Shown in pieces: positions 1-64,000 of a stretch of 64,000 bases of DNA (position 1 is its first letter; every line of letters begins with the position of its first letter). The position numbers and the translations under genes were made by a program. This stretch comes from Guillardia theta CCMP2712 (lineage: Eukaryota; Protista; Cryptophyta): positions 315,086-379,085 of the forward strand of contig NW_005434591.1 of the NCBI RefSeq assembly GCF_000315625.1, given 5' to 3'. The notes under the pieces are model-generated. The model was not told the DNA's origin. It did not search any database and saw nothing but the letters and a program-made list of their open reading frames with translations.

Positions 1-163
1 CTCCTCCTCCTCCTCCTCCTCCTCCTCCTCCTCCTCCTCGTTCTCCCCTTCTCTCCTCTACTCTGCTCTTTTTGTAGCCCGCCCTTGTTGACTGCTGTGC
101 GCTCCCATCCCTATCCTCCTGCTCTCCCTCCTCCCTCCTCTCTTCCCCGTGACGACCGCGCAG

Positions 164-26972: not shown

Positions 26973-27156
26973 TACTGACGACATCAACCAGCGATGTTGC
27001 GCTTGAAGCACTAGCACACATTTTTTGAATTTCTCCCTCAGTATTTCAAAGCTTCTTTTTCACTCCTTTACTTCTCAATCGACCTCAGTGCCCTCTTCCT
27101 CTGATCAGGGTCTCCTCCTCTCCTGCTCGTTTCCTTTATCCCTGTCTCGTCTTGTC

Positions 27157-27357
27157 TCCTCTCCTCTCCTCTCCTCTCCTCTCCTCTCCTCTCCTCTCCT
27201 CTCCTCTCCTCTCCTCTCCTCTCCTCTCCTCTCCTCTCCTCTCCTCTCCTCTCCTCTCCTCTCCTCTCCTCTCCTCTCCTCTCCTCCCCTCCCCTCCCCT
27301 CCCCTCCCCTCCTCCCCTCCTCCTCTCCTCTCCTCTCCTCTCCTCTCCTCTCCTCTC
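27157..27357 (+). repeat. (CTCCT)n microsatellite
   Basis: Direct reading. Confidence 0.95.
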
Positions 27358-27616
27358 CACTTGCTCTGAACTCGATGCGCTCTTTCAAGCAGCTCGGTTC
27401 CAAGTAGCGGTACAGGTGACTCTCGTAGTTCTTCTGTCTTGCGCTATGAATTGAGATTGAAATAGTTTATCAAGTGCCTCAAAGTAATTCCTATGTAAAT
27501 GATTGAGGCGGGCTTTAATTATCTACCCTGAGACCTTTGGGCTAAAATAGTTTACTTGTCAAACGCTTCTTGACGAGGAGGTAGAGGGCGAAAGGAGCGA
27601 GTGAGGCAAGAGGAGT

Positions 27617-27790
27617 GAGGAGAGGAGAGGAGAGGAGAGGAGAGGAGAGGAGAGGAGAGGAGAGGAGAGGAGAGGAGAGGAGAGGAGAGGAGAGGAGAGG
27701 AGAGGAGAGGAGAGGAGAGGAGAGGAGAGGAGAGGAGAGGAGAGGAGAGGAGAGGAGAGGAGAGGAGAGGAGAGGAGAGGAGAGGAGAGG
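27617..27790 (+). repeat. (GAGGA)n microsatellite, reverse complement of the 27157-27357 tract
   Basis: Direct reading. Confidence 0.95.
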
Positions 27791-27972
27791 AGGAGGAAAA
27801 GGACAGATGGAGTCAGTGAAGGTGTGATAAAGTGAAGAGAGTTTTAGAGACGGATGAATAGGATGTCTTTGCCCAAAACATTGCATGCAGTGAGAGTTTG
27901 CGCGAGTTAGGAGGGGAAGGTGAGTATACGTAGACGGATAGGCATTGGAGGACGAAGCAACTGCAAAGAAAG

Positions 27973-32450: not shown

Positions 32451-33080
<630 letters not shown>

Positions 33081-46287: not shown

Positions 46288-49200
46288 ATGGATGGCAGCG
46301 ACGTCGACTTCGAAGCAGATGCTGGTGAGCGATCAAGATAGAAGGAGGAGGAGGAGATGGAAGCAGCGGGGGGAGATGGAGGCAGGAGGAGGAGATGGAG
46401 GCAGGTGGAGGAGATGGCGGCAGGAGGAGATGGCGGGAGGAGGAGGAGAGGGAGGCAGGAGGAGATGGAGGAAGGAGGAGGAGGGAGAGGGAGGCGGGAG
46501 GAGGAGGATATGGCAGCAGGGGGGAGAGAGGCGGGAGGAGGCATGAGAGTGAGGCGGAGGAGGAGGATATGGCAGCAGGGGGGAGAGAGGCGGGAGGAGG
46601 CAGGAGATGGAGGCAGGAGAACGAGGAGATGCAGGCAGCAGGAATGGAGGCAGGAGGAGGAGGATATGGCAGCAGGAGGAGGAGAGGGAGGCAGGAGGAG
46701 GATATGGAGGCAAGAGCAGGATATGGAGGCAGGAGGAGGAAAAGGAGGCAGGAGGAGGAGGAAATGGAGGCAGGCAAGAGGTTGAGAGGGAGGCAGGAGG
46801 AAGAGGAGATGGAGGCAGGAGGAAGAGGAGATGGAGGCAGGCAAGAGGTTGAGAGGGAGGCAGGAGGAGGAGGAGATGGAGGCAGGAGGAAGAGGAGATG
46901 GAGGCAGGAGGAGGATATGGAGGCAGGAGGAGGAGGAGAGGGAAGCAGGCAGGAGGAAATGGGGGCAGGAGGAGGAGGAGATTGAGGTTTTAAAGGAGCA
47001 GCAGCAAGAGAGAAACGGTGGGATAAGAAAATCTCGCGACTATTGCATTTGCCCTACCTTGGCATTTTTATCTCACGCTTCCTGAGAAATACGTCTTAGA
47101 TCAATCATGGTGTTTGACATATGGAGTTGTATCTTCTTAGCTGATGATATTTAGGGTTTAGGATCATGAGTCTTACTTGCTGATAGGACCTGCTCACCAA
47201 GAAAGTGCGTCGAGCGGATCCAGTGTTGACTTCGAAGATGATTATGGCGATCAGCCTCATACAGGAGCTGTGCACCACAACGAAGACATGGTAGTTTTTC
47301 ATTCTTCTCTCCCAGATGTCCAGCGTGGGTCTGACAGAGCTCACAGGGTGAGGGCTCCATCGGCAATGCTGTCAACGATTCTCTGCACTTAGACCGCATG
47401 GTTGCATGGATAGCTTGCATTCAGATGGACCTGCAAGACGCATTGGAGGTTTGTTACAAGGCATCCAAACCTCTCTAGAATCTGACTGTTCTCCTCTATC
47501 AGGAGCACAAGAAGGAGGATCACAACGTGCGCGCACTGGTTCAGCAAATACAAGATCTTCGTGAGAATTTGGTTCCACGGCAAGTTCAAGCTTTAAACTG
47601 TTAATGCAAGGGGACGCCACAGTACGAGATTCATGGAGGCACCTTGAAACGAAGCAGAAGCATGCAGGTTTGTTTTCGAAGCATCATGCCAGCAAGCTTG
47701 TGAATGTTGCTCTGGGTCAGAGCGAATGGCAGAGCTCAATGAGAGGAAGAAATCCCTTCTAGAATTCAGGTAGGCGTCAACGACGCATGTCTAGATTTGA
47801 TAGTTTTTCTAGAATGTTATCAGAACTTGTTCCCAAGAATTCTGACGTCGTTTCGTCAAGACAGAGCGGTATTTCACTTCTTTCTTTGTTGATGTTACTC
47901 CTGCCATGATCATCCGTTGCTCAATCATTGGTTTAGTAGTCTAGATTCAGACTTACCATTTTAAGAACAACCCCCAACAAGACACATGCTTTGAACTGTG
48001 TTCTCATGAATTTCATGTTGAACCTAATTCGTTTCCAGACACCATGTCAGGTGTGAGGCGAGACAGTGATTCGGTAGAATCACCTCAAGTAAGAATACCA
48101 ATGTCCAGCATTTCCGAGACTTTGGTGCTTTTGCTTAGAACCCTCTTCTCTATTACTGATTGTTTCATTCTTTCTGCAGACTGCGTATCTTCCAATATCA
48201 AGAGAATCGGTTTACGCCGCGTTTGCTGGAGTTGGATCAAGTGAAATGCGAGATTGATTTGAGGGACAAGGTTGACCTCACAATCAGGTTCCCCCATATC
48301 GAATCACAACCAGGAAAACTTGGACTCAGAATCAACCGACAGCATCAGATCAAACAGGTTCAACCCTTTGTCACTACTATGAGTTAAAAACTGAATGACG
48401 ATGGCAAGGTCTGTGAAACCAATCAGTTGGGCGAATGAGGAGACAGATAGAAGAAAGGTGAATGGTTTAGCAAGTCAAATACAATTTGAGATTGTTCACC
48501 TTTGTTAGCATATCGACACGGTACTGAAGGGTGAGGAGATTGTAAAGGAAACCAAACCAGATATAGAGTTGGTGTACCCGGAAAAGATGGAACCCCTTGT
48601 TTCTCATGCTTCTGATCAGGTCACTTGATACTTTAGTTGGGCACAACTTAGGCTGCCAAACAGGTGGAAGACGGAGACAGAGGAAGCGAAGAAGAAATCT
48701 CGACTGACGAGGCACAATTCAGTGAAAGCAGCGAATCCATTGGGAGGACGAAGCACAACGATGTTCTAGAACGTTACAAGGAGCAAATCGCTCAACTTGT
48801 TACGGATGCCAAGTTCTTTCGAGAAGCAGGTTCCCTTTCAATCTCGTCGACCTTGATGGTTGACTATGTTGCAGGATGTGATGGCGAATCATTGCTCGAC
48901 GAGCTCATGCAGCAATGCAGTTTTCTCCCGGATGAACAGGCAGTCAAAGTAGTTGTGATATTGTTTGTAACGCTCTTGCAGCATTCCGTCCGAATCGCAC
49001 TGTCTGGCTTATTGTTTAGCCATGACAATGAGGAGTTACAGTCACAAGAGAAATCTCAGGACGAATAAAGTGGATCATGAGTCAGTCAAGTAAGATAGAA
49101 ATGACATGGAATTTTGATGTTCATGGAAATTGTACGATTGACACACCTTGGTCACTCTCTGTTGACCTGTCGACATTAAATAAGAAGAGCAGCAAGGAAC

Positions 49201-51768: not shown

Positions 51769-53449
51769 ATGGGGGGTGGGGCACGGTGGGCGCTTGCCGG
51801 CTCCTGCCTCCTGGCGTGGCTCGGGGGCGTGTCGGGGCAGGGCTTCATGCCGGTCCACGGGAGCATCAACGTGATGCCCACGGCTGCGCTGCACTCGGCA
51901 TCGAGCGTGTCGTACGACTACGCCGCGCGGGTGTGGTCGATCCAGCTGACCTTCGACGCCGGGGTGGCAGGGGTGCCGTACGCGCCCTTCCTGCTCGACC
52001 AGCGGCGGGACACGGGGCCGAGCCTCAACTTCCTCTCGGAGGTGGCGCCGTGGTGCGGGCTGGTGCGCTCCTACTGCTGCTTCGAGGACCTCCTCAACGG
52101 CACGCTCTACTTCAACGACGCGCTGGCCTCCGCCGTCTCCGGGCTGGGCGCGTGCGCCTCGGCGCCGGGGGCGTGGGCCGCGGCGCTGGCCGACCCCTCG
52201 GCGTACGGCGGGGTCCGGCCCGCGGGCAACGTCACGTTCGACTTCGCGGGCAACACGCTGCGCATCCCGCACGAGCAGGCGCAGCTGTACGGGCGCGAGT
52301 ACCTGGACCAGAACAACAACTACGTCGTGGACCTCCGCTTCCTCGCGGTGTTCCAGTCGGCGGCGGCGGGGGTGCTGGAGCTCGCATGGGTGCCGTACCA
52401 GGCCGTGCTGCTCCGCGACATCGACGGGCTCTTCGGGCGCTCGTACGAGGACGTGCGGCAGTGCGTGGCGGCGCCCTACCCGAGCCCGGCCGACTCCTTC
52501 TGGCTGGCGCGCTACGCCTCCCCCGCCTCGGCGGACAAGGTGTGCGAGTGGTACTGCAACCTGGGGCGCTACAGCTTCCCGCTCCACGCGGCGCAGGCGG
52601 AGAGGCTGGCCGCCCGCGCGGGGCATCGCCGTGGGGTACAGCCTGTGGCTGCTGATGAACACGACGGAGCTGTCGCGGGCGCTGGGAGCGGACGTCGTGC
52701 CGCGCAACCTGACGATGGAGTCGGCGCCGACGGTGCCGGCCTGGCTGGACTCGGTGGCGGCCAACATGAGCGCGGGCATCGCGGAGCAGGTGGCGAGCAT
52801 CGCGGGGAGGGCGGTCGGGGTGCGGGCGCTGGCGGAGCTGCACAACACCCAGTACGCGCGGGAGTGGCGGGTCTACATGCACACGCTGAGGGCCGTGTAC
52901 GAGCGGCTGAACCCCGGCAGCGCCGTGGCGGGGCTCGAGACCGTGTTCCTGCGGGAGAGCGCCTCGCAGCCGTACGCGTTCCCGCCCTGGCTGCAGCAGA
53001 TGGGGGTGTTCGACCGGGAGGGCACGGTCGCGGTGGCGGACTACCCGGTCGCGAGGCGGTCGGGCCCGCGCGTGGGCCTGCAGCGGCGCGGCGGGCGGAG
53101 GCAGGCGCTGCCCGCGGCCCCCATCGACGCGGTGGCGATGGAGATGGTCGTCTTCCTCGACACGCAGGGGCTGACGGTGGGGGAGGTGGTCAACTCGATC
53201 TTCCAGGCGGGGGTGGCGATGGTGAACTCCACCTCGCTCCGGGGGCTGTGGGGGATGGACATCTTCGTGCGGGAGCTGACCGTGCGGGTGGAGCCCGTGG
53301 GGAGCCGGTTCCAGGGCGGCTTCCTGGTCTCCTTCCTCCTGCTCGGGGCCGCGGGGGCCGCGCTGGCGTGCCTGGGGTGCTACGCCCTGTCCGTCCCGCC
53401 CTACGAGCGCCTGCGCAGGGCTCCGGGCTCGTATGCAGACGCGGGTTGA
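51769..53449 (+). pseudogene. GC-rich intronless type I membrane glycoprotein gene with one frameshift at about 52600-52630
   Basis: TATAAA at 51728. Signal peptide MGGGARWALAGSCLLAWLGGVSG and a CEWYCNLG motif. Sensible protein continues in frame 52631-53449 and ends in TM GFLVSFLLLGAAGAALACLGCYAL. Confidence 0.65.
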
Positions 53450-53509
53450 AATTCCGAGCGTATTTAGGGCGGGAGGCCGCGCCGCACCCCATGGTTGCTG
53501 GCGGCCGGT

Positions 53510-53914
53510 ATGTCGTACAGGCAGTCCTCGAAGCAGGTGGAGCGCCACAAGCACGTGGGCGAGCTGGACAACCTTCATCGCTTTGAGAGCGAGGCCATCG
53601 TGACGACCGTCAACGAGATCGCCGAGGGGGGGCTGAGGCCGCGGACGCAGCTGCTGGACGCCGCGGACTGCCACACGCTGGTGCGGGCCACGCTGACGCT
53701 GGGCGGGGTGGGCGGCGGCGGGGAGGATGGGGCGGGGACCGTGCTGGCCTCGGCGATGATGAAGGTGCCCGTGGGCGTGCCGAGCGGGGCGGACGCGGCG
53801 ACCTCCGCGGCGCTGCTGTCGAAGATGCTCGGCCCCAACAGCGGCCTCTTCGCGGGGCACGAAGACGCGCGGACGGCGATGCTCCGGCACCTCCGCGGCC
53901 TGTTTAGGGTTTAG
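53510..53914 (+). pseudogene. GC-rich intronless ORF truncated by telomere addition
   Basis: MSYRQSSKQVERHKH... reads directly into CTG-TTTAGGG, and the stop is supplied by the telomeric repeat. TATTTA at 53461. Confidence 0.6.
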
Positions 53915-53958
53915 GGTTTAGGGTTTAGGGTTTAGGGTTTAGGGTTTAGGGTTTAGGG
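53903..53958 (+). repeat. Interstitial telomeric tract (TTTAGGG)8
   Basis: Direct reading. Confidence 0.98.
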
Positions 53959-55105
53959 GGCCCCTGACAGAGGCAGGGGCCCCTGACAGAGGCATGCTGC
54001 TCTGCGGCGCGTAGGGAGAGCGCAAGAGGACCGGAGGAAGCTGCGAGCAAGAGGTTTGTATAGTTCAAACAGCTTTCTAAGCATGGTACTACAGTATGAT
54101 GAGAGCGTTCGCAACCTGCTGTATCGGAGATCATGCCAATACACGCAGGGCGAGCGCTCTGGAGGCCACGTCGAAGAGGCCGCCGACCTCGTCGAGAGGG
54201 TGAAGAACTTCGCGAAGCGGTATCCTGGTAGTAGGACAGCTCATGCTTGCAGAGCTGAGGGGGGATGCACCCCCGACGCTATCGCTGAAGCCATCCGCTC
54301 AACATGTCGGCAGGCGAGACGCGACCTGTTTGAAGACTCTCTGAGGGAATGGAGCTCAGAGTCGAGAGCATGGTTTATACAACAGATGGAGGAGGCCAAG
54401 AAGCAGAATGTCGAGACATACATCGGCACAGAAGGCACCGAGGGGACCTCCTTCATCTCCATGACTCTCCTGGGCATCTCCTCGATGTATGTTCGACAAG
54501 AAGACAAGTTGAAATCGAAGCTTATGGAGCTAGGTCTCATGGTAGACTCAGTCGATGGCACCTTACAGACCTGAGATAGCACGAGCAGACGACATCTCAG
54601 TCACCGTCTCCTTCCTTCGGAATGAAGCAGCCATGGAGCTATGGGAAGGCAGGAGAGAATACTGCATAGACGGCAGATCGTTCAGAGCCACAGAGGTGAG
54701 CATTGCACATGACCGGTCCTTCAAGCTTCGAGCCAAGCGAGGACCTTGGGGCAAGGGAGGGAGCCTTGCCGAGCTATCACAGCTCTTAGCTCTTGGAGGA
54801 ATGTCGACGGCCGACATAGCTCAGATCTATCGATTTCAGCTGCTCTCGCAATCTCTTGCAGCCGCAGAGGTACAACCACTTGCGGGCATGCTCGTGCAGG
54901 GTCCTGGGGGCAAGTACTGGCACTCTCCAGCAAAAAGAGCTGGAGTGGGTGCTCAGCTCGCCTTCGACGGCAAGTTGCGAGCAGACCTTGGCCTCGTTCA
55001 GAGAGAGCGAGGCGATGGAGGGGGTACATCTCACTCTCATCAGCGACGACGCCAAGCTCAGAGAGACGTTTGCAGTCGAGCTCACAGCCGACACCTTCGT
55101 TCCTA
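53959..55105 (+). mobile_element. Telomere-associated element copy 1 (degenerate, 3'-truncated by piggyBac)
   Basis: About 2 copies of the 19-bp unit AGGGGCCCCTGACAGAGGC, a uORF at 53994 and ORF1 from 54083, clearly homologous to 60699-62846. Two deletion frameshifts at about 54553 and 54915. Homology ends at TADTFV. Confidence 0.85.
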
Positions 55106-55580
55106 GTGGCTAAGTGACACAAAGGTTTTTCGGGTTTTTGCCGTTTTCTCACGGGCAAACCTTTAGAGGGCATTAAAAGGTGGGGTGGGGGTGTATGTGT
55201 ACGGGTATATTTGTATTACAAATGTACCGGTTCCAAGCTCATTCGGGGGGGTAGGGGTACTCGTCTGCCGAAAAAATGGCGCGCGGGCATCCTCCAGGAG
55301 GTGGGTGCATAGCGTACTTGCCCGCCTTTGCCAGGATCCATTTGTCTTCACATGCACAGGACGTGATCATATTAGTGTAAATATGATTCAAAAAATCCAT
55401 TTTCTTATCCTTTCCATCAGTTTTTGTCCAATGAACACGGTTTGTGAAATCGCCAACTCGTCTTCGATGCAACTGAAATGAACATTCTTGCACAGACAAG
55501 CAGGTAACAACAGTCGAATATCGTTTAATGATATCAAAACTTATTTGATCATGCTTAAGATCTGTTAATTTGTTCTTCAA

Positions 55581-55764
55581 TTACGCAAAATTTTCCTTAC
55601 AGCAATGTCGTGAAAAACAGTTCCTTTGCGTTCCAGGACCACACAATCCAAAAGGGCGCTTCAATGGATCGTTTTTGCTGCACTGGTAACAGCAAAAGGA
55701 AGTCTTGCAACCATGTTTGTCCCTGCCACAGCATACCTTACACCTTACACGAGTTACTTTCGCT
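55581..55764 (-). pseudogene. Detached piggyBac C-terminal cysteine-rich domain
   Basis: Manual translation, absent from the ORF track: AKVTRVRCKVCCGRDKHGCKTSFCCYQCSKNDPLKRPFGLCGPGTQRNCFSRHCCKENFA-TAA, matching the RCxxC..KT..CxxC..LC..CF..H pattern. Confidence 0.85.
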
Positions 55765-58551
55765 CATAGCGTTGTCGCTCTCAACTGACCCCTCTGGTTT
55801 CCAATAGTTTTCTGTGGGGGTATCCTTCCACATATGTGAATAGCAAATGGCAGTTGGGGTCTGGGGTGGGTCAGACGGCTGGGAGCTGATTCAAATTGGT
55901 TGGGACCAGTTTAAGGGGGTAGGGTACTTCCTGGTAGCAAATAATTGTACCAACAGTACCATTTTTATGGTACACATAGAGTACTGTTAGGAAAACTTGT
56001 ACCAAAATAGTTTATGCGGTACCTCCCCTGTTCAAACTATGATGCTTTGGACCCACCTGTTTCCCAGTGAAAGTCCCTTCTCCGATGGGGTCAAGTTTTG
56101 GACCCTACCCTGCCTCCGACCAACATAGACCACCCTTGTAGATCAGAGGGAGCTCTCAAGCCTTGCCCCTTCCCTTCCCTGGTTGCATATCCAAGGTTAG
56201 CAAGTGAATGTTACGCAGACGTGACTCGTCTGCAGCAGGAGAGCTCAGACGAGGACAAGCAGAGGCAATCCTTGCAGAATCTGGTGTGAGCGCAGCAGTC
56301 TGAATACATCTCTGTGATTGCAAACACATGTAAAGAGGGTTGATCATCATAGATTTTAGCAGCTTGAATAAGGAGTACTCTGCACGGACCGTCCGCTAGT
56401 GGCGCTGTACGATGGATGACATTGACTCTCATGAGCAATAAGTAGGAAGTCATGAAGCATGTCACGGAGACAGCATGATCTATACTTATTTCATAGGAAT
56501 CTGCTGCAAAGAGTCGGGCTTGAGGGCGTTCTGAGCAATATGCAAGAGTATTGCCAAGGCATGTAAAGAGTTTCAAGGAATACCAGTGCATTCATCAAAT
56601 AGCAGTGATGAGGTACCACATGAAGGCATGACTTGCAAATTGATTGCATGTCGTGTTCCATTTGATGACTTACAATCAAGACGCTTTTGAGCGACAAAAC
56701 GATACCCCTTATAGCATTGTAAATCATATTTCATTTCCTTCACCTCGAGTCGAAGCAAGAAATTTTCAAGGTGCTGATATCTTTGTTTTGACTAGACTGA
56801 CATGGTATCAGGAGCAGTTAATTTATGATAGATCCGATTGAATCATGCAGACGAAAATGGACATACCCTTTTGAATAAATCTTTCTCCTCGAGTCTCATA
56901 CCTGAGCTTTCTTGCCTCTTCTTTGTAACCTAACATGTACAAAGCATTGGCATTTTCTTACACAAAGTAAACTGAGCCTGACCAGCTTCTCTTATTCGCT
57001 GCATTCTCGCCCTTCCATCATCCTGATCTTTTCCTCGCTTGACACCCTTGGGCCAATGCGAGTTGCATGCTGCGATATCATCAATTGCTTGGAACCAAGC
57101 GATAAGTGGAACAAAGCGCTCAGGTGCTATGCAGGCTGCAATGCATCGCCGGCATTCCAACCATATGGATAAGTTTGCCAACTTTGCGCTGCTCATATTA
57201 CTTGCAGCGAAAGTCAACCATTCCAGATGATAAGGACAATGTATGAGACTTGCGCAGAAGAATGTGCAAACACTTCCACACGACGGTGAGTGTGCACGAT
57301 TCCACATACACAAGAATGCTGCGCAGAAGTATCTACCAATTTCTTGTCTAACCACTCTTTTGATGAATTAGCATCGACTTCTCTAACATGTACATCAGGT
57401 CATGCAGGCTCATGGAGAAATGATGATGTTGTTAGCAACAACTTGGCTTTGTTTTATTGAAGTACGTTAAAAACATCACCTAGGCCGCTACATATTCCCA
57501 TGTCCGCTTTGCAACAGTTCTGAACCACGTATCACCATAAAGTTGTACATCAATCGACTAGTCCGATAACATCTTCATGTAGAGCCTCAGTTTCAAGCAC
57601 AACGCGGTTTGGAGCGATACTGTGACTTGTTTGCCTGGTATGATTACATGTGACATGCTCCCTTAGACAATTGAAGAGTATTGTAGAAAATTCAGTCAAG
57701 CGGTGCACAGTTCAGCCTTTCTTTCTTACTATTCATCAAACATAGTGTATCAGACAGATGTCATTGTGTGGATCGACGCAAAATAAAGATGAACTCGAAG
57801 TTCTGTCTGAAAAATGACCCTTTGCAAGTACTGATGGATCGAGAGCAAGTTCTTGATGCTGTATCATTGAGAAGTAAAATAACAGTCATTTGCCAGTGCT
57901 ACACGACTCGTATCCATCAGCTTGAAATATGCACACCTGAGTTTCATTCCATGAATCATCTTTCCTCCCGCATTCAAACTGAGAAACTCAGTGCTTGTCA
58001 ACTCATGGGCATGGTTTCAGAGTTTGAATTTCCAGCAAGTTGAGGAAGGACAAGGCAGACAGAAGCGTCAAAGAAAGTTGAGGGTCATCAGGGAAGGTCT
58101 GACGAGAGTCTGAGCCTCATGAACAGGGAAGGATAGGGATGCGCAAGTGTGGAGGGCAGGGAGATGGGGAGGGAGACACCCTCTGCTAAATGTATTTTAA
58201 AAGGTACCCATTACAGTACCAGACCAAGACCTGTACCCCCCACCCCCCTGTCGCGTCCGTTGGGTTCGAATATTTGAAATACTACCACGCCTACCCATCA
58301 GTTTCTGGTACAAATCATTACTCCACTATACAAGCGCTATGTGACCCTATCCAAAGACAAATAGGAACGATTGTTTACTTATCTAAGCTCTCAATTACCC
58401 CCGATTGCCGTTGAACTTGCAGCGCTGGAAATGGATTTTCAAACCTTCCAATCCTTGGATTTTTTACTCACACACAATTTTGTACTGGGAAACGCCTGGA
58501 TCTGGTACAAATCCCAATTGTCAGCAAGTTCCTTGACCCGACAACGCTATG
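55765..58551. mobile_element. Unclassified 2787-bp insertion with 13-bp terminal inverted repeats
   Basis: CATAGCGTTGTCG at 55765-55777 and its reverse complement at 58539-58551, at the points where the transposase is split. No TSD seen. The interior is AT-richer with decayed minus-strand coding remnants. Confidence 0.7.
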
Positions 58552-58584
58552 GACGTCCTTGGAACGGCCCGTGTCGTCTTGTGC

Positions 58585-59730
58585 TCAGCCAAAAAATTGT
58601 TCACGGAAACAAGAAAATGTAGCATGCCTCTTTCTTTTCCGCGAAGGTCTCCCGCCTTCAAAGCTATTTGTCATCATCTGAACGGAAAGATCAGCAATGA
58701 ACGAAGAGTGATCAATATCTTCATCTGTTTCCTTGTACAAGCAGTAAACCTTGTAAGCGTCCACCTCAATCATGCCCATGATAGATGTCATCATTCTGAA
58801 AATCCAATTCTGTGTACGAACGCAGTCTTCGAGACCTAAACTGGATTGTCTCAGTTGATTGTGACGATCGATAACTCCTGCTGATGTGAAATATGACTTC
58901 ACCATAGCTGTTCTGGGAACCGTGAAGGTCCAAGGAACCCGCTCCTGAGTCTCTGGTACCGTCCTCATTCGACGCTTCACATGTGGATCTGTAGAGGTCG
59001 TGGTATTCCACGTGGAAATCAAGATCTTCTTCGGCAATCCACGGCGTCCAGGTTCATTCCAGGCATGAGCATACACGTATAAATCCTGTCCATTAACTTC
59101 GCGTACCAGCCTTGCAGTCTTCGTGGCTCCTCTGGGGGGGTGTGGCTCCCATGCTGCACCATTCAGGTAAGCTTTCGGGAACCCAGAATACGCTGTTTTG
59201 ACTAAACCCGTAAAAAAAGTGTTCCGTTCCAGAAGCGCGACGGCTGTTGAAAGTGAAGCAAACGCTGAGTCTCCGTATAGAATATGACCCTTCCCGAGGT
59301 AATTTTGCATGATGCGAAGAACCAGAGCTGTGTGCTTTGGATATTGAGAGTTGTATTGCCTGGTACCCATCTCCTCTTTGCCTTCTTGCAACTCCAGATG
59401 GAGCATGATCCCAAAAGTGCATTCAGCCAGATTCTTGTACTCGCTTCCCTTCCACCCTGTCACACGTCAAGATTCAAGCAATGAAACAACCAAATCTAAT
59501 CAGTACCTGCCGGCATGGATTCCATTTTCCCATTGATTCATCAATTGTCAATTCGCTTCCAGCTCGAACAGTTCGAAGCCTATTGCGATTGAACGCTTCG
59601 ATAAGAGGACGAATCTTGTCAAACCGTTGCCTAGACCCGTCGGCTTGAGGTGGCCACAGTTTCAAGTGTTTTTTCCACAGTTCAAACCGCCTACGCGATA
59701 CTCCAAAGCGGTTGCCGATGTCAAGTGGGG
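58585..59730 (-). pseudogene. piggyBac (DDE_Tnp_1_7-type) transposase core
   Basis: FGVSRRRFELW, FDKIRPLIEAFN, catalytic TIDESM, YGDSAFAS and VIDRHNQLRQ, plus W..R......IEVDAY. Short intron at about 59457-59506; the reading frame is broken there. Confidence 0.9.
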
Positions 59731-59731
59731 G

Positions 59732-59846
59732 AGGGTTTAGGGTTTAGGGTTTAGGGTTTAGGGTTTAGGGTTTAGGGTTTAGGGTTTAGGGTTTAGGGTT
59801 TAGGGTTTAGGGTTTAGGGTTTAGGGTTTAGGGTTTAGGGTTTAGG
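59732..59846 (+). repeat. Interstitial telomeric tract AGGG(TTTAGGG)15TTTAGG
   Basis: Direct reading. Confidence 0.98.
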
Positions 59847-60606
59847 AGGCGCCGTTATTTTCGGCAGGCGCCGTTATTTTCGGCAGGCGCCGTTATTTTC
59901 GGCAGGCGCCGTTATTTTCGGCAGGCGCCGTTATTTTCGGCAGGCGCCGTTATTTTCGGCAGGCGCCGTTATTTTCGGCAGGCGCCGTTATTTTCGGCAG
60001 GCGCCGTTATTTTCGGCAGGCGCCGTTATTTTCGGCAGGCGCCGTTATTTTCGGCAGGCGCCGTTATTTTCGGCAGGCGCCGTTATTTTCGGCAGGCGCC
60101 GTTATTTTCGGCAGGCGCCGTTATTTTCGGCAGGCGCCGTTATTTTCGGCAGGCGCCGTTATTTTCGGCAGGCGCCGTTATTTTCGGCAGGCGCCGTTAT
60201 TTTCGGCAGGCGCCGTTATTTTCGGCAGGCGCCGTTATTTTCGGCAGGCGCCGTTATTTTCGGCAGGCGCCGTTATTTTCGGCAGGCGCCGTTATTTTCG
60301 GCAGGCGCCGTTATTTTCGGCAGGCGCCGTTATTTTCGGCAGGCGCCGTTATTTTCGGCAGGCGCCGTTATTTTCGGCAGGCGCCGTTATTTTCGGCAGG
60401 CGCCGTTATTTTCGGCAGGCGCCGTTATTTTCGGCAGGCGCCGTTATTTTCGGCAGGCGCCGTTATTTTCGGCAGGCGCCGTTATTTTCGGCAGGCGCCG
60501 TTATTTTCGGCAGGCGCCGTTATTTTCGGCAGGCGCCGTTATTTTCGGCAGGCGCCGTTATTTTCGGCAGGCGCCGTTATTTTCGGCAGGCGCCGTTATT
60601 TTCGGC
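59847..60606 (+). repeat. Perfect tandem array: 40 x 19 bp AGGCGCCGTTATTTTCGGC
   Basis: 760 bp = 40 x 19, no variant unit seen, internal GCCG/CGGC stem. Confidence 0.97.
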
Positions 60607-60698
60607 AGCATGGCTCCTCGTCAGGTGTAGGGGAAGCCGCCAGGGCGCCAAGGAAGCTGCAAGCGAGAGGTTTGTATACTTCAAATAGCTTTCTAAGT

Positions 60699-62846
60699 AT
60701 GGTTCTTCAGTATGATGAAAATGTTCGCAACCTGCTGTATCGGAGATCATGCCAATACACGCAGAGCGGACTTGTGGATGCCTCTGTCCTCGAAGCTGAT
60801 CTCGTCGAGAGGGTGAAGAGCTTCGCGAAGCGTTATCCGAACAGCAGGACAGCCCAGGCTTGCAAGGCTGTGGAGGGATGCACCCCCGACGCTATCGCAG
60901 AAGCCATCCGCTCGACATGTCAGCAGGCACGACGTGAGTTTCTGCAAGAAGCGATGACTGGATGGAGTGACGCATCCAGAGAGTGGTTTATGCAGCAGAT
61001 TGAAGAAGCCAAGAAGGAGAAGGTTGAGACATACACCGCCTCAGCAGGCAACGAGGTGACTTCCTTCATCTCCATGACTCTCCTGGGCATCTCCTCGGTG
61101 TATGTCAACCATGAAGAAAAGCTGAAGAAGAAATTTGAAGAGATCGGACTGATCGTAGACTCAGTGCAAGAGAGTAAAGCAATCATGTGGAAGGCTCCGT
61201 ATAGACCCGAGATAGCGAGTGCTGAGGAGATCCCGGTGACTGTTTCCTTCCTCCGCAATGCACAAGCGGAGAAGCTCTGGCAGGGAAGAGAGGACTTCGC
61301 GATCGATGGTCGCAAGTTCACAGCTGTACATGTGAGCATCGTGCACGATCGATCTTTCAAGATTCGAGCCAAGAGAGGACCCTGGGGCAAAGGGGGCAGC
61401 TTGGCAGAGCTGACTCACCTGCTAACCTTGGGCGGCATGACAACGGCTGAGATAGCTGCCGTCTATCGCTATCAGCTGCTGCGCCAGTCCCTTGCAGCGG
61501 TCCAACTCCAGCCGCTGGCAGGCATGCTGGTCGCTGGGGCGCCAGGACAGCAAGTCCACAAAGGCTTAGGTCAGAAAGGCTTCATCGCTGTAGGGGCCAA
61601 CGTCATCTGGAGACAGAGGGAGGTGGAGTGGATCGTCTCCTCGAGCTGCCCAGAGGCGAATGATACAGCATTTCGAGCTTTCCGAGAGAGCGAAGCGATG
61701 GAGGGAGTACACCTGACTCTGTTCAGCGAGGACCCGAAGATCAGAGAGGCGCTCGCAGTCGAGTTGACAGCTGATCGCTTTGTGTCCAGAAATAAGTTGA
61801 AGAAGGCATCAAGGATGCAGAAGAAGGCAGGCGGCAAGGACGGCAAGGAGATCAAGATCATCATCAAGTCGACGGCAGCATCTGGTCGCTTCACGAGGAA
61901 GGAGATGGAGGGGCTGTGCAACGGCGGCAACACGTCTATCGCAAGAGTCAAGAGAGTCTTGTTGGAGATCGCTAACAGGCTCGAGATCAACGTTGAAGGC
62001 ATCGACATGGAGGAGGATTTGAACACCAAGTCCTGGAACGGGTCCAAGCTATGCATCCTCCTCGGCTCCACGGAGGATGCTCGACGCATGATGAAGGAGC
62101 TGCCCTTCTATCTCGAAGGCGCAGCAACCAAGCTCGAAGCAGTCGGCTTCGACAAGGAGCCTGACTCTGAGGCGGCTGGTCAGCGGGGCACCAGCGACGC
62201 AGCGCAGCGACAGGAGGAGAGCGAGGGAGAGTGGCTGGAGTTTACAGACCTGGAGAGGATCACAATGGAGGCAGCATCTCCGTCAAGCCAAGAGGACATG
62301 CAGCTCGTCAGCGAGCTGTCAGCAGTCATCGAAGATGCAGCTTCTTTGAACGAGGCGGGGACGAGCGAGCCGATCAAGCTGGTCCTGGACAAGGCCGTTG
62401 GCAACCTCCACGACACCTTCTACTCTCCGGGGAGCCTGGAGTTCATGTCGCTGGGAGAGTGGGCGAAGATGCCAGAGGAGCAGGGAGTTGGGCGCAACGT
62501 TCTCAAGGAGAAGCTGGGGAAGTGGCTGCAGAGCAAGCGCTGGACTCGCGTGCAAGGAGAGAGCAAGAAGGCAAGGAGGGGCAGCGCGTTCTCGCCACGG
62601 GCAACGGCAGCTGCTGAGCTTGAGCAGGAGGCGGAGAGCGACGACATAGAGCGTCGATCTCTTAGCTTCCTGTTCATAGCACTGAGTAAATTCGCAGAGA
62701 TGCATGTGCTGGCCTGCTCGCTGAAGGTGGACAAGAAGGACCGACTGCGGGTGGAGATGAGGGAAGATGACGAAGAAGAGGAAGACATGGAGGAAGAGCA
62801 AGGCGAGGGCGAGGAAGAAGACGGGGCGAGCCCGTACCGAGCTTGA
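60699..62846 (+). CDS. 715-aa ORF1/Gag-like protein with RRM-like segments and an acidic C-terminal tail
   Basis: Intact, intronless ORF. RRM-like pattern ISMTLLGI..EEKLKKKFEEIG..VTVSF..AQAEKLW..FAIDGRKFTAV and a second-like KLCILLGSTEDARRMMKELPF. No YxDD RT motif or endonuclease motif recognised. The fold call is inference. Confidence 0.8.
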   Translation: MVLQYDENVRNLLYRRSCQYTQSGLVDASVLEADLVERVKSFAKRYPNSRTAQACKAVEGCTPDAIAEAIRSTCQQARREFLQEAMTGWSDASREWFMQQIEEAKKEKVETYTASAGNEVTSFISMTLLGISSVYVNHEEKLKKKFEEIGLIVDSVQESKAIMWKAPYRPEIASAEEIPVTVSFLRNAQAEKLWQGREDFAIDGRKFTAVHVSIVHDRSFKIRAKRGPWGKGGSLAELTHLLTLGGMTTAEIAAVYRYQLLRQSLAAVQLQPLAGMLVAGAPGQQVHKGLGQKGFIAVGANVIWRQREVEWIVSSSCPEANDTAFRAFRESEAMEGVHLTLFSEDPKIREALAVELTADRFVSRNKLKKASRMQKKAGGKDGKEIKIIIKSTAASGRFTRKEMEGLCNGGNTSIARVKRVLLEIANRLEINVEGIDMEEDLNTKSWNGSKLCILLGSTEDARRMMKELPFYLEGAATKLEAVGFDKEPDSEAAGQRGTSDAAQRQEESEGEWLEFTDLERITMEAASPSSQEDMQLVSELSAVIEDAASLNEAGTSEPIKLVLDKAVGNLHDTFYSPGSLEFMSLGEWAKMPEEQGVGRNVLKEKLGKWLQSKRWTRVQGESKKARRGSAFSPRATAAAELEQEAESDDIERRSLSFLFIALSKFAEMHVLACSLKVDKKDRLRVEMREDDEEEEDMEEEQGEGEEEDGASPYRA

Positions 62847-62876
62847 GCTGAGCTCAAGGTAAGTAGAGAAGGTGGA

Positions 62877-63081
62877 GGCGACCGAAGGCCAAGGTGAGGA
62901 GAGGCAACTCTCCTGACTGAGGCTGAGGAAGCTGAATGGAGGAGGAGTAGGTGGCGACCGAAGGCCAAGGTGAGGAGAGGCAACTCTTCTGACTGAGGCT
63001 GAGGAAGCTGAATGGAGGTAGAGTAGGTGGTGACCGGCCAAGGTGAGGAGAGGCAACTCTTTTGACTGAGGCTGAGGAAGC
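62877..63081 (+). repeat. 76-bp tandem repeat (about 2.7 copies) in the 3' UTR with a GCAA-tetraloop hairpin
   Basis: Units start at 62877, 62953 and 63029. Stem is AGGAGAG-GCAA-CTCTYYT. Confidence 0.9.
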
Positions 63082-63157
63082 CAAGAGAAGACAGCAAAAG
63101 TAGAAAGTAGAAAATTGCAAACGCCCACAACGAGGCCGAGCAACATTCTAGCATTCT

Positions 63158-63188
63158 AATAAACTCACATAATAATAATAATAATAAT
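63158..63188 (+). terminator. AATAAA signal and (AAT)n tail of element copy 2
   Basis: AATAAACTCAC-AT(AAT)6 joined to AGGG(TTTAGGG)4. Confidence 0.75.
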
Positions 63189-63220
63189 AGGGTTTAGGGT
63201 TTAGGGTTTAGGGTTTAGGG
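63189..63220 (+). repeat. Interstitial telomeric tract AGGG(TTTAGGG)4
   Basis: Direct reading. Confidence 0.98.
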
Positions 63221-64000
63221 CTGGAGTAACAGACATGCTCTCCTCCCCTGCAGTTTGAGGGGATCCCTGCGAGCTAGGGTGCTGAACAGGATATTTTTCT
63301 GTGCAGAAACGGTTGTTTGATCATGTGGTATCTATCCAAAGAGGAAAGGAAACAGATTGCTCGTGTCCGAGTTTCCCAGTTCCTAAACAAGGACACGACA
63401 CCTTCAGCACCTTCGCTAGGAGAGCTGATCCGAAGATTGGAACACTTCGTCAGGCAGTACCCTCAGAGCAGGACAGGCAGAGCCTTGCAGTCCAAGGAAG
63501 TCTCGATGAACGCCTTAGCCGAAGCCATTCGACAGACCTGCAAACATGCTGAAGTCAGGAGCCAGGAGGATGCCATCAAAGAATGGGGGGAAGAAGGACA
63601 GTCGTGGTATGTCTCTGCATGGAACGCAGACAAACAGGAGGTACTAGACAAGAGTGCCTGCATCGATGCTTCAGGAGCGTCCCCCGAGAGTGGTAAACTG
63701 ATTACCATGGCTATCCTCGGAGTTCCTACCCAGTACATAAAACAAGTTGAGGTACTGTGTGAGAAGTTGAAGGATCAAGGACTCTTGGTGCACGAGGAGC
63801 AGGGCAAGAAATGCATCTCGTGGAGAGCCCCGATCAAGAAAGATTTGATTCCGACAGTGGATGAAATCCCAGTCGTGGCAACACTCCAATTGAACGACGC
63901 AGCAGAACTGCTGTGGAAAGGACAGACGAACTTCAGGATCGACGGAAAGATGATCCGCGCGGTGAACGCGCATTCGAAGCATCCTTGCTCCTCAAGATAA
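63221..64000 (+). mobile_element. Telomere-associated element copy 3 (divergent subfamily), continues beyond the window
   Basis: ORF from ATG 63323 aligns in register with copy 2 (YPxSRT, AxAEAIRxTC, IxMxxLG, WxAP, EIPV, LWxG..FxIDG). Its TAA at 63998-64000 looks like the result of a 1-bp deletion in a TCCTTCAAGATA (SFKI)-like site. Confidence 0.85.

Follow-up and report, generated by a model that had tools for sequence, protein, structure and literature searches.

Organization of the scaffold end

The stretch of the Guillardia theta CCMP2712 genome analyzed here (64,000 nt, referred to as the window) ends where its scaffold ends. Three mobile-element copies lie in its distal part together with tracts of telomeric heptamers, and their features are listed in Table 1. 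Copy 1 is a 5'-truncated member of what we call family 1, copy 2 belongs to family 2, and copy 3 is the 5' part of an autonomous LINE. Copies 1 and 2 are about 74–82% identical to each other across the first ~1.2 kb.

Table 1. Positions of the element copies, their parts and the telomeric tracts in the window.
Feature	Position	Strand	Remarks
Telomeric heptamers x8 fused to unique GC-rich sequence	53902..53958	+	Innermost edge of terminal element array
Family-1 leader (copy 1), 5'-truncated, 2 units of 19 nt	53957..53994	+	TRF, x2.0
Family-1 5' UTR and frameshifted ORF1 remnant, later interrupted or 3'-truncated	53995..55106	+	
uORF of copy 1	53995..54015		
Telomeric heptamers x16.4, upstream flank of copy 2, joined to non-element sequence	59732..59846	+	
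Family-2 19-nt 5' leader AGGCGCCGTTATTTTCGGC, 40 perfect tandem copies	59847..60606	+	TRF, sequence reading
Rest of family-2 5' UTR: AGC (60607–60609), then uORF	60607..60698	+	
Family-2 uORF, 6 codons	60610..60630	+	From ATG at 60610
ORF1 of copy 2, 715 aa	60699..62846	+	
76-bp tandem repeat x2.7 in 3' UTR of copy 2	62877..63081	+	
3' terminus of copy 2: conserved end CTAATAAACTCA, then (TAA)n tail	63156..63187	+	
Telomeric heptamers x4.7 separating copy 2 from copy 3	63188..63220	+	
Autonomous LINE (copy 3), 5' part: leader, uORF, ORF1 start	63221..64000	+	Cut by scaffold end
Partial leader unit of copy 3	63221..63234	+	6 nt lost
uORF of copy 3	63235..63258		

A block of ~4.6 kb with a higher AT content separates the truncated family-1 element from the telomeric tract that follows, and it contains the remnant of a piggyBac-like DDE transposase (58585–59463, minus strand; PF13843, E = 6e-16). 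The non-telomeric part of the window also holds long pentanucleotide and purine-rich simple repeats, perfect or nearly so, at 32636–32978, 27155–27797 and 46343–46987; one example among them is (CTCTG)x68.6, with 100% identity.

The 40-unit array and its reliability

Copy 2 begins with a long array of one 19-nt unit. TRF reported a repeat of period 19 at 59847–60608, comprising 40.1 copies of AGGCGCCGTTATTTTCGGC with 100% matches and no indels, and reading of the sequence agreed with TRF on 40 whole units. The 40 flawless copies claimed in the original prediction are thus present in the assembly. The start of the predicted span was also correct, but its end, at 60612, is the G of the ATG and takes in six bases (AGCATG) beyond the last unit. 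As had been proposed, the AG that follows the unit repeats the unit's own first two bases. The prediction had further assigned about two leader units to copy 1 and one to copy 3; TRF bore out the former, but the unit of copy 3 is only partial.

The biggest arrays in the assembly, which we take to be of the Sanger era, are all about 0.6–0.85 kb long, and runs of N adjoin several of them (L077, L101, L111 and L089). Because the largest arrays are so alike in size and several lie next to N runs, the assembly may cap or mis-size them, and the size of the long arrays, including the count of 40, may be affected. The tandem array as such is genuine, since 31-mers spanning from one unit into the next are present in independent public runs, from a 2011 study and a 2025 run (only two sampled words), and since reiterated leaders also occur in two independent assemblies, a Logan contig (L114) and a metagenome contig (L115). 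For RNA with two or more units, a query of sequencing runs with array sequence alone gave too weak a signal to use: one run of guessed RNA type held half of only two sampled words. The 40-unit array is uniform and has no junction signature of its own, so that the evidence from junctions described below comes from other arrays.

Family-2 copies across the genome

The junction between the family-2 leader and the element body occurs 95 times in the 87-Mb genome, whereas a reversed control pattern occurs 0 times, which rules out chance as an explanation. The 95 5' ends are strictly oriented: 51 lie on the plus strand, all toward right scaffold ends, and 44 on the minus strand, all toward left ends. 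The family-2 copies point outward and adjoin telomeric tracts both upstream and downstream.

The 5' regions L009–L094 were examined, and unit counts were scored for 85 copies. A single unit was found in 37 copies and 2–11 units in 29, while nine copies were 5'-truncated and had no unit. Longer arrays comprised seven copies with 15–19 units and one copy each with 24, 36 and 40 units. Whole-unit counts therefore vary from 0 to 40 among the loci, with no one fixed array length, and they reach at least 42 in the autonomous LINE, which removes the significance that had been attached to a count of exactly 40. The long arrays differ from one another in upstream flank and in the length of the telomeric tract, which indicates that they are separate insertions. 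The duplicated ends among the examined loci were trivial duplicates with equal unit numbers (L049/L078/L088 and L069/L083).

The view that the array repeats the 5'-terminal segment of the element was confirmed by the recurrence of the leader/body junction and by the lack of any unlinked satellite in the examined 5' regions. Nearly all examined arrays abut an element body, and a free satellite or minisatellite was ruled out on this ground. The few arrays that are body-less or internally deleted (L038, L103, L110 and L023) sit within the same terminal element arrays, and the unit-dimer matches, among the matches listed, are all near scaffold ends.

Reiterated leaders in other families

Reiteration is common to at least five further leader sequences of 19–21 nt, and the unit starts at the element's first base in every case. 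The canonical family-1 leader has 20 or 21 nt, begins ACCGGG and forms arrays of 17–24 units (L095, L102 and L104); its full-length 20-nt form at other loci is ACCGGGCCCCTGACAGAGGC, and the leader of copy 1 is a 5'-truncated version of it joined to telomeric AGGG. The autonomous LINE has the 20-nt leader AGGCCGCTGGAGTAACAGAC, present in 5'-truncated form in copy 3 and in arrays of 29, 21 and at least 42 units at other ends. A variant of family 2, family 2b, has arrays of 10–11 units. Two more leaders are known from body-less arrays under a telomeric cap (L110 and L103). Three units with two junction types are found in L114, and L115 carries another 20-nt leader seven times in front of an element with ORF1 and ORF2. 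The expectation that unrelated leader sequences would behave alike thus held for families 1, 2 and 2b, the autonomous LINE, L110, L103 and L115.

The architecture of the leader is kept across families and consists of an A, a GC-rich near-palindrome, an AT-rich stretch, G(G/A)C, and then A..ATG with a uORF. This uORF has 6–7 codons and opens at an ATG right after the leader in every family (in family 2, 3 nt after it; in L115, at ~3521). The more specific rule that all leaders have the form AGG...G(G/A)C did not survive the comparison, because family 1 begins ACC and the AGG(G) start of copies 1 and 3 is largely the end of the telomeric repeat. The mini-hairpins that had been proposed for the leaders were compared with shuffled sequence and showed no advantage in folding (z from -1.6 to +0.6), and a conserved leader hairpin was rejected on the basis of this comparison. 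An Rfam E-value scan of 53000–64000 gave nothing relevant, R2/HDV-like self-cleaving ribozymes at the 5' end included.

Junctions between units

We counted 17 substitutions in 407 family-2 unit cores of 16 nt each (0.26% per base), and 67 of 330 family-2 junctions (20%) were non-canonical, that is, not AGG. In most of the variant junctions the sequence reads on past the leader by A, AG, AGC, AGCATG or AGCATGG and restarts at base 1–3, giving units of 20–26 nt; a few contain 1–3 unexplained bases. Units of 37, 56 and 61 nt are rarer in family 2. The points of re-entry downstream are +19 to +26, +37, +56 or +61. Microhomology at the junctions amounts to 0–2 nt and in one case to 6 nt, and it is this identity, GGCGCC at +2..7 and +55..60, that accounts for the 61-nt unit (L019). 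In the window the same two segments (60589–60594 and 60642–60647) can pair with each other in the predicted fold of the 5' UTR (z = -2.2). The canonical 19-nt junction has AG in common between +1/+2 and +20/+21, and in family 1 and the autonomous LINE just an A is shared at the junction point.

Several junction types occur within one array in L026, L080, L114 and L115; the array of L115 has four among its seven units. In the long family-1 arrays one odd junction, AG before ACC, returns at irregular spacings, and runs of variant junctions are also found, such as AGGG eleven times. The left edge is unit base 1, beside the telomeric tract, in about two thirds of the arrays, compared with 1 in 19 expected from random truncation. 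Left edges are therefore mostly phase-locked and unit counts variable, as the original prediction had anticipated. In four arrays the first unit beside the telomeric tract is incomplete and reduced to C, GC or GGC. Compared with a geometric model, the array lengths show an excess of single units (37, with 15 expected) and of arrays of at least 15 units (10, with 3 expected), and array length varies by element sub-lineage (Kruskal-Wallis p = 0.006).

Two chimeric structures were also observed. At L023 (G000:C29:715169-717423) an 11-unit array is joined to the final ~90 nt of the 3' UTR, which makes a mini-element, and at L009 (G000:C4:1271780-1273600) a 15-unit array is fused to an internal site of the 3' UTR, with no telomeric tract and with +20..+84 deleted.

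The autonomous partner and the shared 3' end

The autonomous LINE at L113 has an ORF1 of 701 aa and an ORF2 of 2500 aa. Pfam assigned to ORF2 an APE domain (PF03372, residues 447–630) and a reverse transcriptase (RT) domain (PF00078, RVT_1, residues 1165–1418), and about 13 near-identical RT matches were found at scaffold ends. The nearest solved structures to this RT are R2 RTs, with an E value of 3e-23 as against 5e-16 for L1 ORF2p. The R2 enzymes are the classic template-jumping RTs. Toward the C-terminus of ORF2 (~2298–2400) a CCHC-like motif at 2298 is followed by PD...E, motifs that stand in a region with no PDB or Pfam match and make it a candidate restriction-like endonuclease beside the N-terminal APE. 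These features bear on the Dualen/RandI clade, which is defined by APE plus a restriction-like endonuclease, the first recognized here by Pfam and the second represented by candidate motifs. A related ORF2 in L115 gave a weak match to Peptidase_C48.

A Pfam search of ORF1 of copy 2 identified no domain. Its close relatives are many and all are hypothetical proteins of Guillardia theta CCMP2712; further relatives come from the transcriptome of Hanusia phi (37% identity). An entry filed under the Heterocapsa arctica transcriptome (P0013, EukProt) is 100% identical to part of ORF1 and is probably Guillardia contamination. The matches in these two transcriptomes suggest that ORF1 is expressed.

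The 3' UTRs of different families close with CTAATAAACTCA and a short-repeat tail. The tails after CTAATAAACTCA are family-specific and consist of (TAA)n, (TAC)n or (TA)n, as seen in L010, L012, L013, L077 and at 63170–63187 of the window. Because this terminus is held in common, the families apparently share one mobilizing RT. The common end is presumably recognized by the RT of the autonomous element, and the partners would be mobilized thereby. The sense strand of the elements is the G-rich strand, so that insertion needs a nick in the C-rich strand, which fits the endonuclease(s) in ORF2. The system thus combines fixed orientation in telomeric tracts, an autonomous member with RT and endonuclease, and a shared 3' end, as expected of telomere-targeted LINEs, and copy 2 is a full-length, ORF1-only, non-autonomous member of it.

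Probable breakage and healing of element-bearing telomeres

Telomeric repeats are joined straight to unique sequence or to the middle of an ORF at 53901/53902 and 59731/59732 of the window and at L062, L101, L108 and L109, and 3'-truncated elements and body-less arrays lie under telomeric caps at L038, L062, L101, L103 and L108–L110. Taken together, these structures suggest that chromosome ends repeatedly break or erode, are healed by telomerase and then receive new insertions, a pattern similar to that of MoTeR arrays (PMC7367193). The body-less arrays L038 (G000:C134:170585-172405), L103 and L110 have telomeric flanks and end at G-rich unit positions, as would be expected for telomerase healing inside the array. 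Long runs of variant telomeric repeats were also seen, of the TTTCGGG type at L110 (G000:C173:294-1320), of the GGGGTTA type at L036 and of an alternating TTGAGGG type at L079.

Origin and growth of the arrays

We favor, with moderate confidence, the view that the 40-unit array is a reiterated 5' leader that was founded by RT template switching at the RNA 5' end and expanded later by slippage. During target-primed reverse transcription (TPRT), the RT would reach the free 5' end of the RNA, jump back to a position just past the leader and copy the leader anew. Re-entry would be mostly at +20, where the AG at +20/+21 matches the one at +1/+2; entry at +20 to +26 or farther downstream would be less frequent. 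A mirror-image slip when second-strand synthesis starts would yield an identical product. Once two or more units are present, homology-driven slippage would lengthen and shorten the arrays, acting either on multi-unit RNA in reverse transcription or on DNA through replication slippage or unequal exchange at the telomere. Growth of this second kind would give long homogeneous arrays such as the 40-unit array, whose perfection fits either substrate.

In at least six leaders of unrelated sequence the duplication always has element base 1 as its left edge, which points to a process that sees this base as a free end. Such an end might be the RNA 5' end in first-strand synthesis or the cDNA 3' end at the start of the second strand. 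The variable points of re-entry, the minimal microhomology, the extra bases and the chimeras L023 and L009 fit template switching by the element's RT. In turn, the over-dispersion of array lengths, their dependence on sub-lineage and the runs of like junctions suggest that a rare founding duplication was followed by easier, homology-driven expansion. The telomerase-like re-copying put forward in the original prediction therefore agrees with the data as far as re-copying by RT as the origin is concerned, but a single run of 40 units is not supported, since lengths are over-dispersed and variant junctions come in runs. Re-copying is also demanding, because a hybrid of 19–21 bp has to be unwound and realigned on only 0–2 nt, and we found no conserved hairpin that could help.

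Read strictly, the original prediction would have all 40 units made in one integration by processive, telomerase-like addition, with the RNA 5' end as the boundary and realignment on the AG at +20/+21. The sequence is compatible with telomerase-like synthesis, given this AG identity, the perfect array and the conserved unit phase, including the excess of left edges at unit base 1; processivity itself is a property that cannot be read from a genome. The odd family-1 junction at irregular spacings would look like the repeated stochastic error of one process, and the partial units at some array starts like an aborted last round. However, a constant-probability process does not predict over-dispersed lengths, and the homogeneous junction runs and sub-lineage-dependent lengths fit inheritance plus slippage. 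Moreover, we know of no precedent among LINE RTs for realigning on 1–2 nt after a 19-bp hybrid. For these reasons we consider synthesis of the whole array in one pass unlikely. Processes at the DNA level only would act in the unstable chromatin of telomeres, through slippage during replication, unequal exchange between sister chromatids or break-induced replication, and have precedents in the (TTTGGG)n tracts at MoTeR 5' ends (PMC7367193) and in the 5'-biased VNTRs of FoTeRs (PMC12857005). The homogeneity of the long arrays, the signs of breakage and healing (telomere-capped body-less arrays and 3'-truncated elements) and the second VNTR, of 76 bp, in the 3' UTR are also in line with them. Length variation of the MoTeR 5' short repeats, seen in long reads, has been attributed to replication slippage (PMC7367193), and on this precedent DNA-level processes alone could have produced most of the 39 extra units. 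They leave unexplained, however, why the duplicated segment of at least six unrelated leaders starts exactly at element base 1, as well as the read-on junction variants and the mixed junction types in short arrays. Dinucleotide microhomology of the AG...AG type occurs throughout the element, yet the terminal segment alone is reiterated. As the sole origin of the arrays, DNA-level processes thus seem to us quite improbable.

The units could also serve to promote or initiate transcription, in the manner of the mouse L1 monomers, a role that is compatible with any origin, including one by RT. Upstream units would drive starts at the downstream C|A junction, and multi-unit copies would be the transcribed masters. 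An internal promoter is needed because the upstream flank consists of telomeric repeats only, and all unit junctions are pyrimidine-purine (C|A) steps. In family 2 a TTATTTT lies ~30 nt upstream of the start of the next-but-one unit, although this TATA-like spacing is limited to that family. The conserved leader architecture and the effect of sub-lineage on array length can be read in the same way, whereas known LINE promoter monomers are ten times as long, and the 37 of 85 scored copies with a single unit speak against such a role. We regard it as a possibility that we do not expect to hold. It is rather doubtful, and we suggest it tentatively, that the R2-like RT has a repeat-addition mode in which realignment on 1–2 nt allows the terminal 19–21 nt to be re-copied up to 40 or more times per integration, regenerating the promoter/initiator array. 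If true, a retrotransposon that resides in telomeres would itself have a telomerase-like activity at its 5' end, one that would offset the erosion of the array by transcription.

Relation to known systems

How LINE 5' ends are defined and preserved is poorly understood, as is the origin of 5' tandem units like the L1 monomers. In the junctions described here, dozens of distinct re-entry events at the 5' end of the RNA appear to be preserved, across several families. Because the events are many and span several families that apparently share one RT, they offer a natural system for the study of template switching at the end of TPRT, with a bearing on the relation of retrotransposon RTs to telomerase. 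Our analysis also documents a telomere-targeted LINE system in a cryptophyte; a limited search of the literature yielded no description of reiterated 19–21-nt 5' leaders or of telomeric LINEs in Guillardia.

The closest known case is that of MoTeR1 and MoTeR2 of Magnaporthe oryzae and the FoTeRs of Fusarium oxysporum. Like the Guillardia elements, these are non-LTR elements embedded in telomeric repeats in fixed orientation, with an autonomous member and a non-autonomous partner that has the same termini, a short tandem repeat of variable number at the extreme 5' end, and de novo telomere addition that caps truncated copies (PMC7367193, PMC12857005). The MoTeR 5' repeats are telomere-like hexamers, TTCGGG(TTTGGG)n, whereas the Guillardia units are 19–21 nt long, family-specific and unrelated to the telomeric heptamer. 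The RT of MoTeR is of the CRE/SLACS clade, and its only nuclease is a restriction-like endonuclease, in contrast to the APE domain and R2-like RT found here. Slippage during replication is held responsible for the length variation in MoTeR, whereas the junction spectrum in Guillardia points to RT template switching for the founding events. Guillardia thus adds long family-specific units and junction signatures of RT switching to what is seen in the MoTeR/FoTeR case.

The bacterial DRT2 RT copies a short RNA segment repeatedly, with jumps from the 5' to the 3' boundary, and so produces concatemeric DNA (PMC12039810). Repeated copying of one short template, as in DRT2 and telomerase, is what we propose for Guillardia, where its processivity would be putative. 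DRT2 and telomerase are dedicated ribonucleoproteins with structured boundaries, whereas the boundary in Guillardia would be the RNA 5' end.

SART1 and TRAS1 of Bombyx mori depend on an endonuclease to insert into telomeric repeats (cited in PMC7367193), and they share with the Guillardia elements the telomeric target, the strict orientation and a sense strand confined to a particular strand of the telomere. Their 3' end is poly(A), in contrast to the (TAA)n, (TAC)n or (TA)n tails found here, and to our knowledge no reiterated 5' leader arrays have been described for them. Mouse L1 also has a variable count of tandem 5' units upstream of ORF1, but its monomers are about 200 bp long and have proven promoter activity, whereas the Guillardia units are 19–21 nt long and their promoter role is putative. 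Tails of the (TAA)n type are also present in the Drosophila I factor, for which Chaboissier et al., in 2000, reportedly proposed that the 3' (TAA)n arises by reiterative copying of the RNA terminus and drew a comparison with telomerase. The I factor repeat is 3 nt long and lies at the 3' end, where RT initiates, whereas the repeat in Guillardia is 19–21 nt long, lies at the 5' end and, as proposed here, would be formed at termination.
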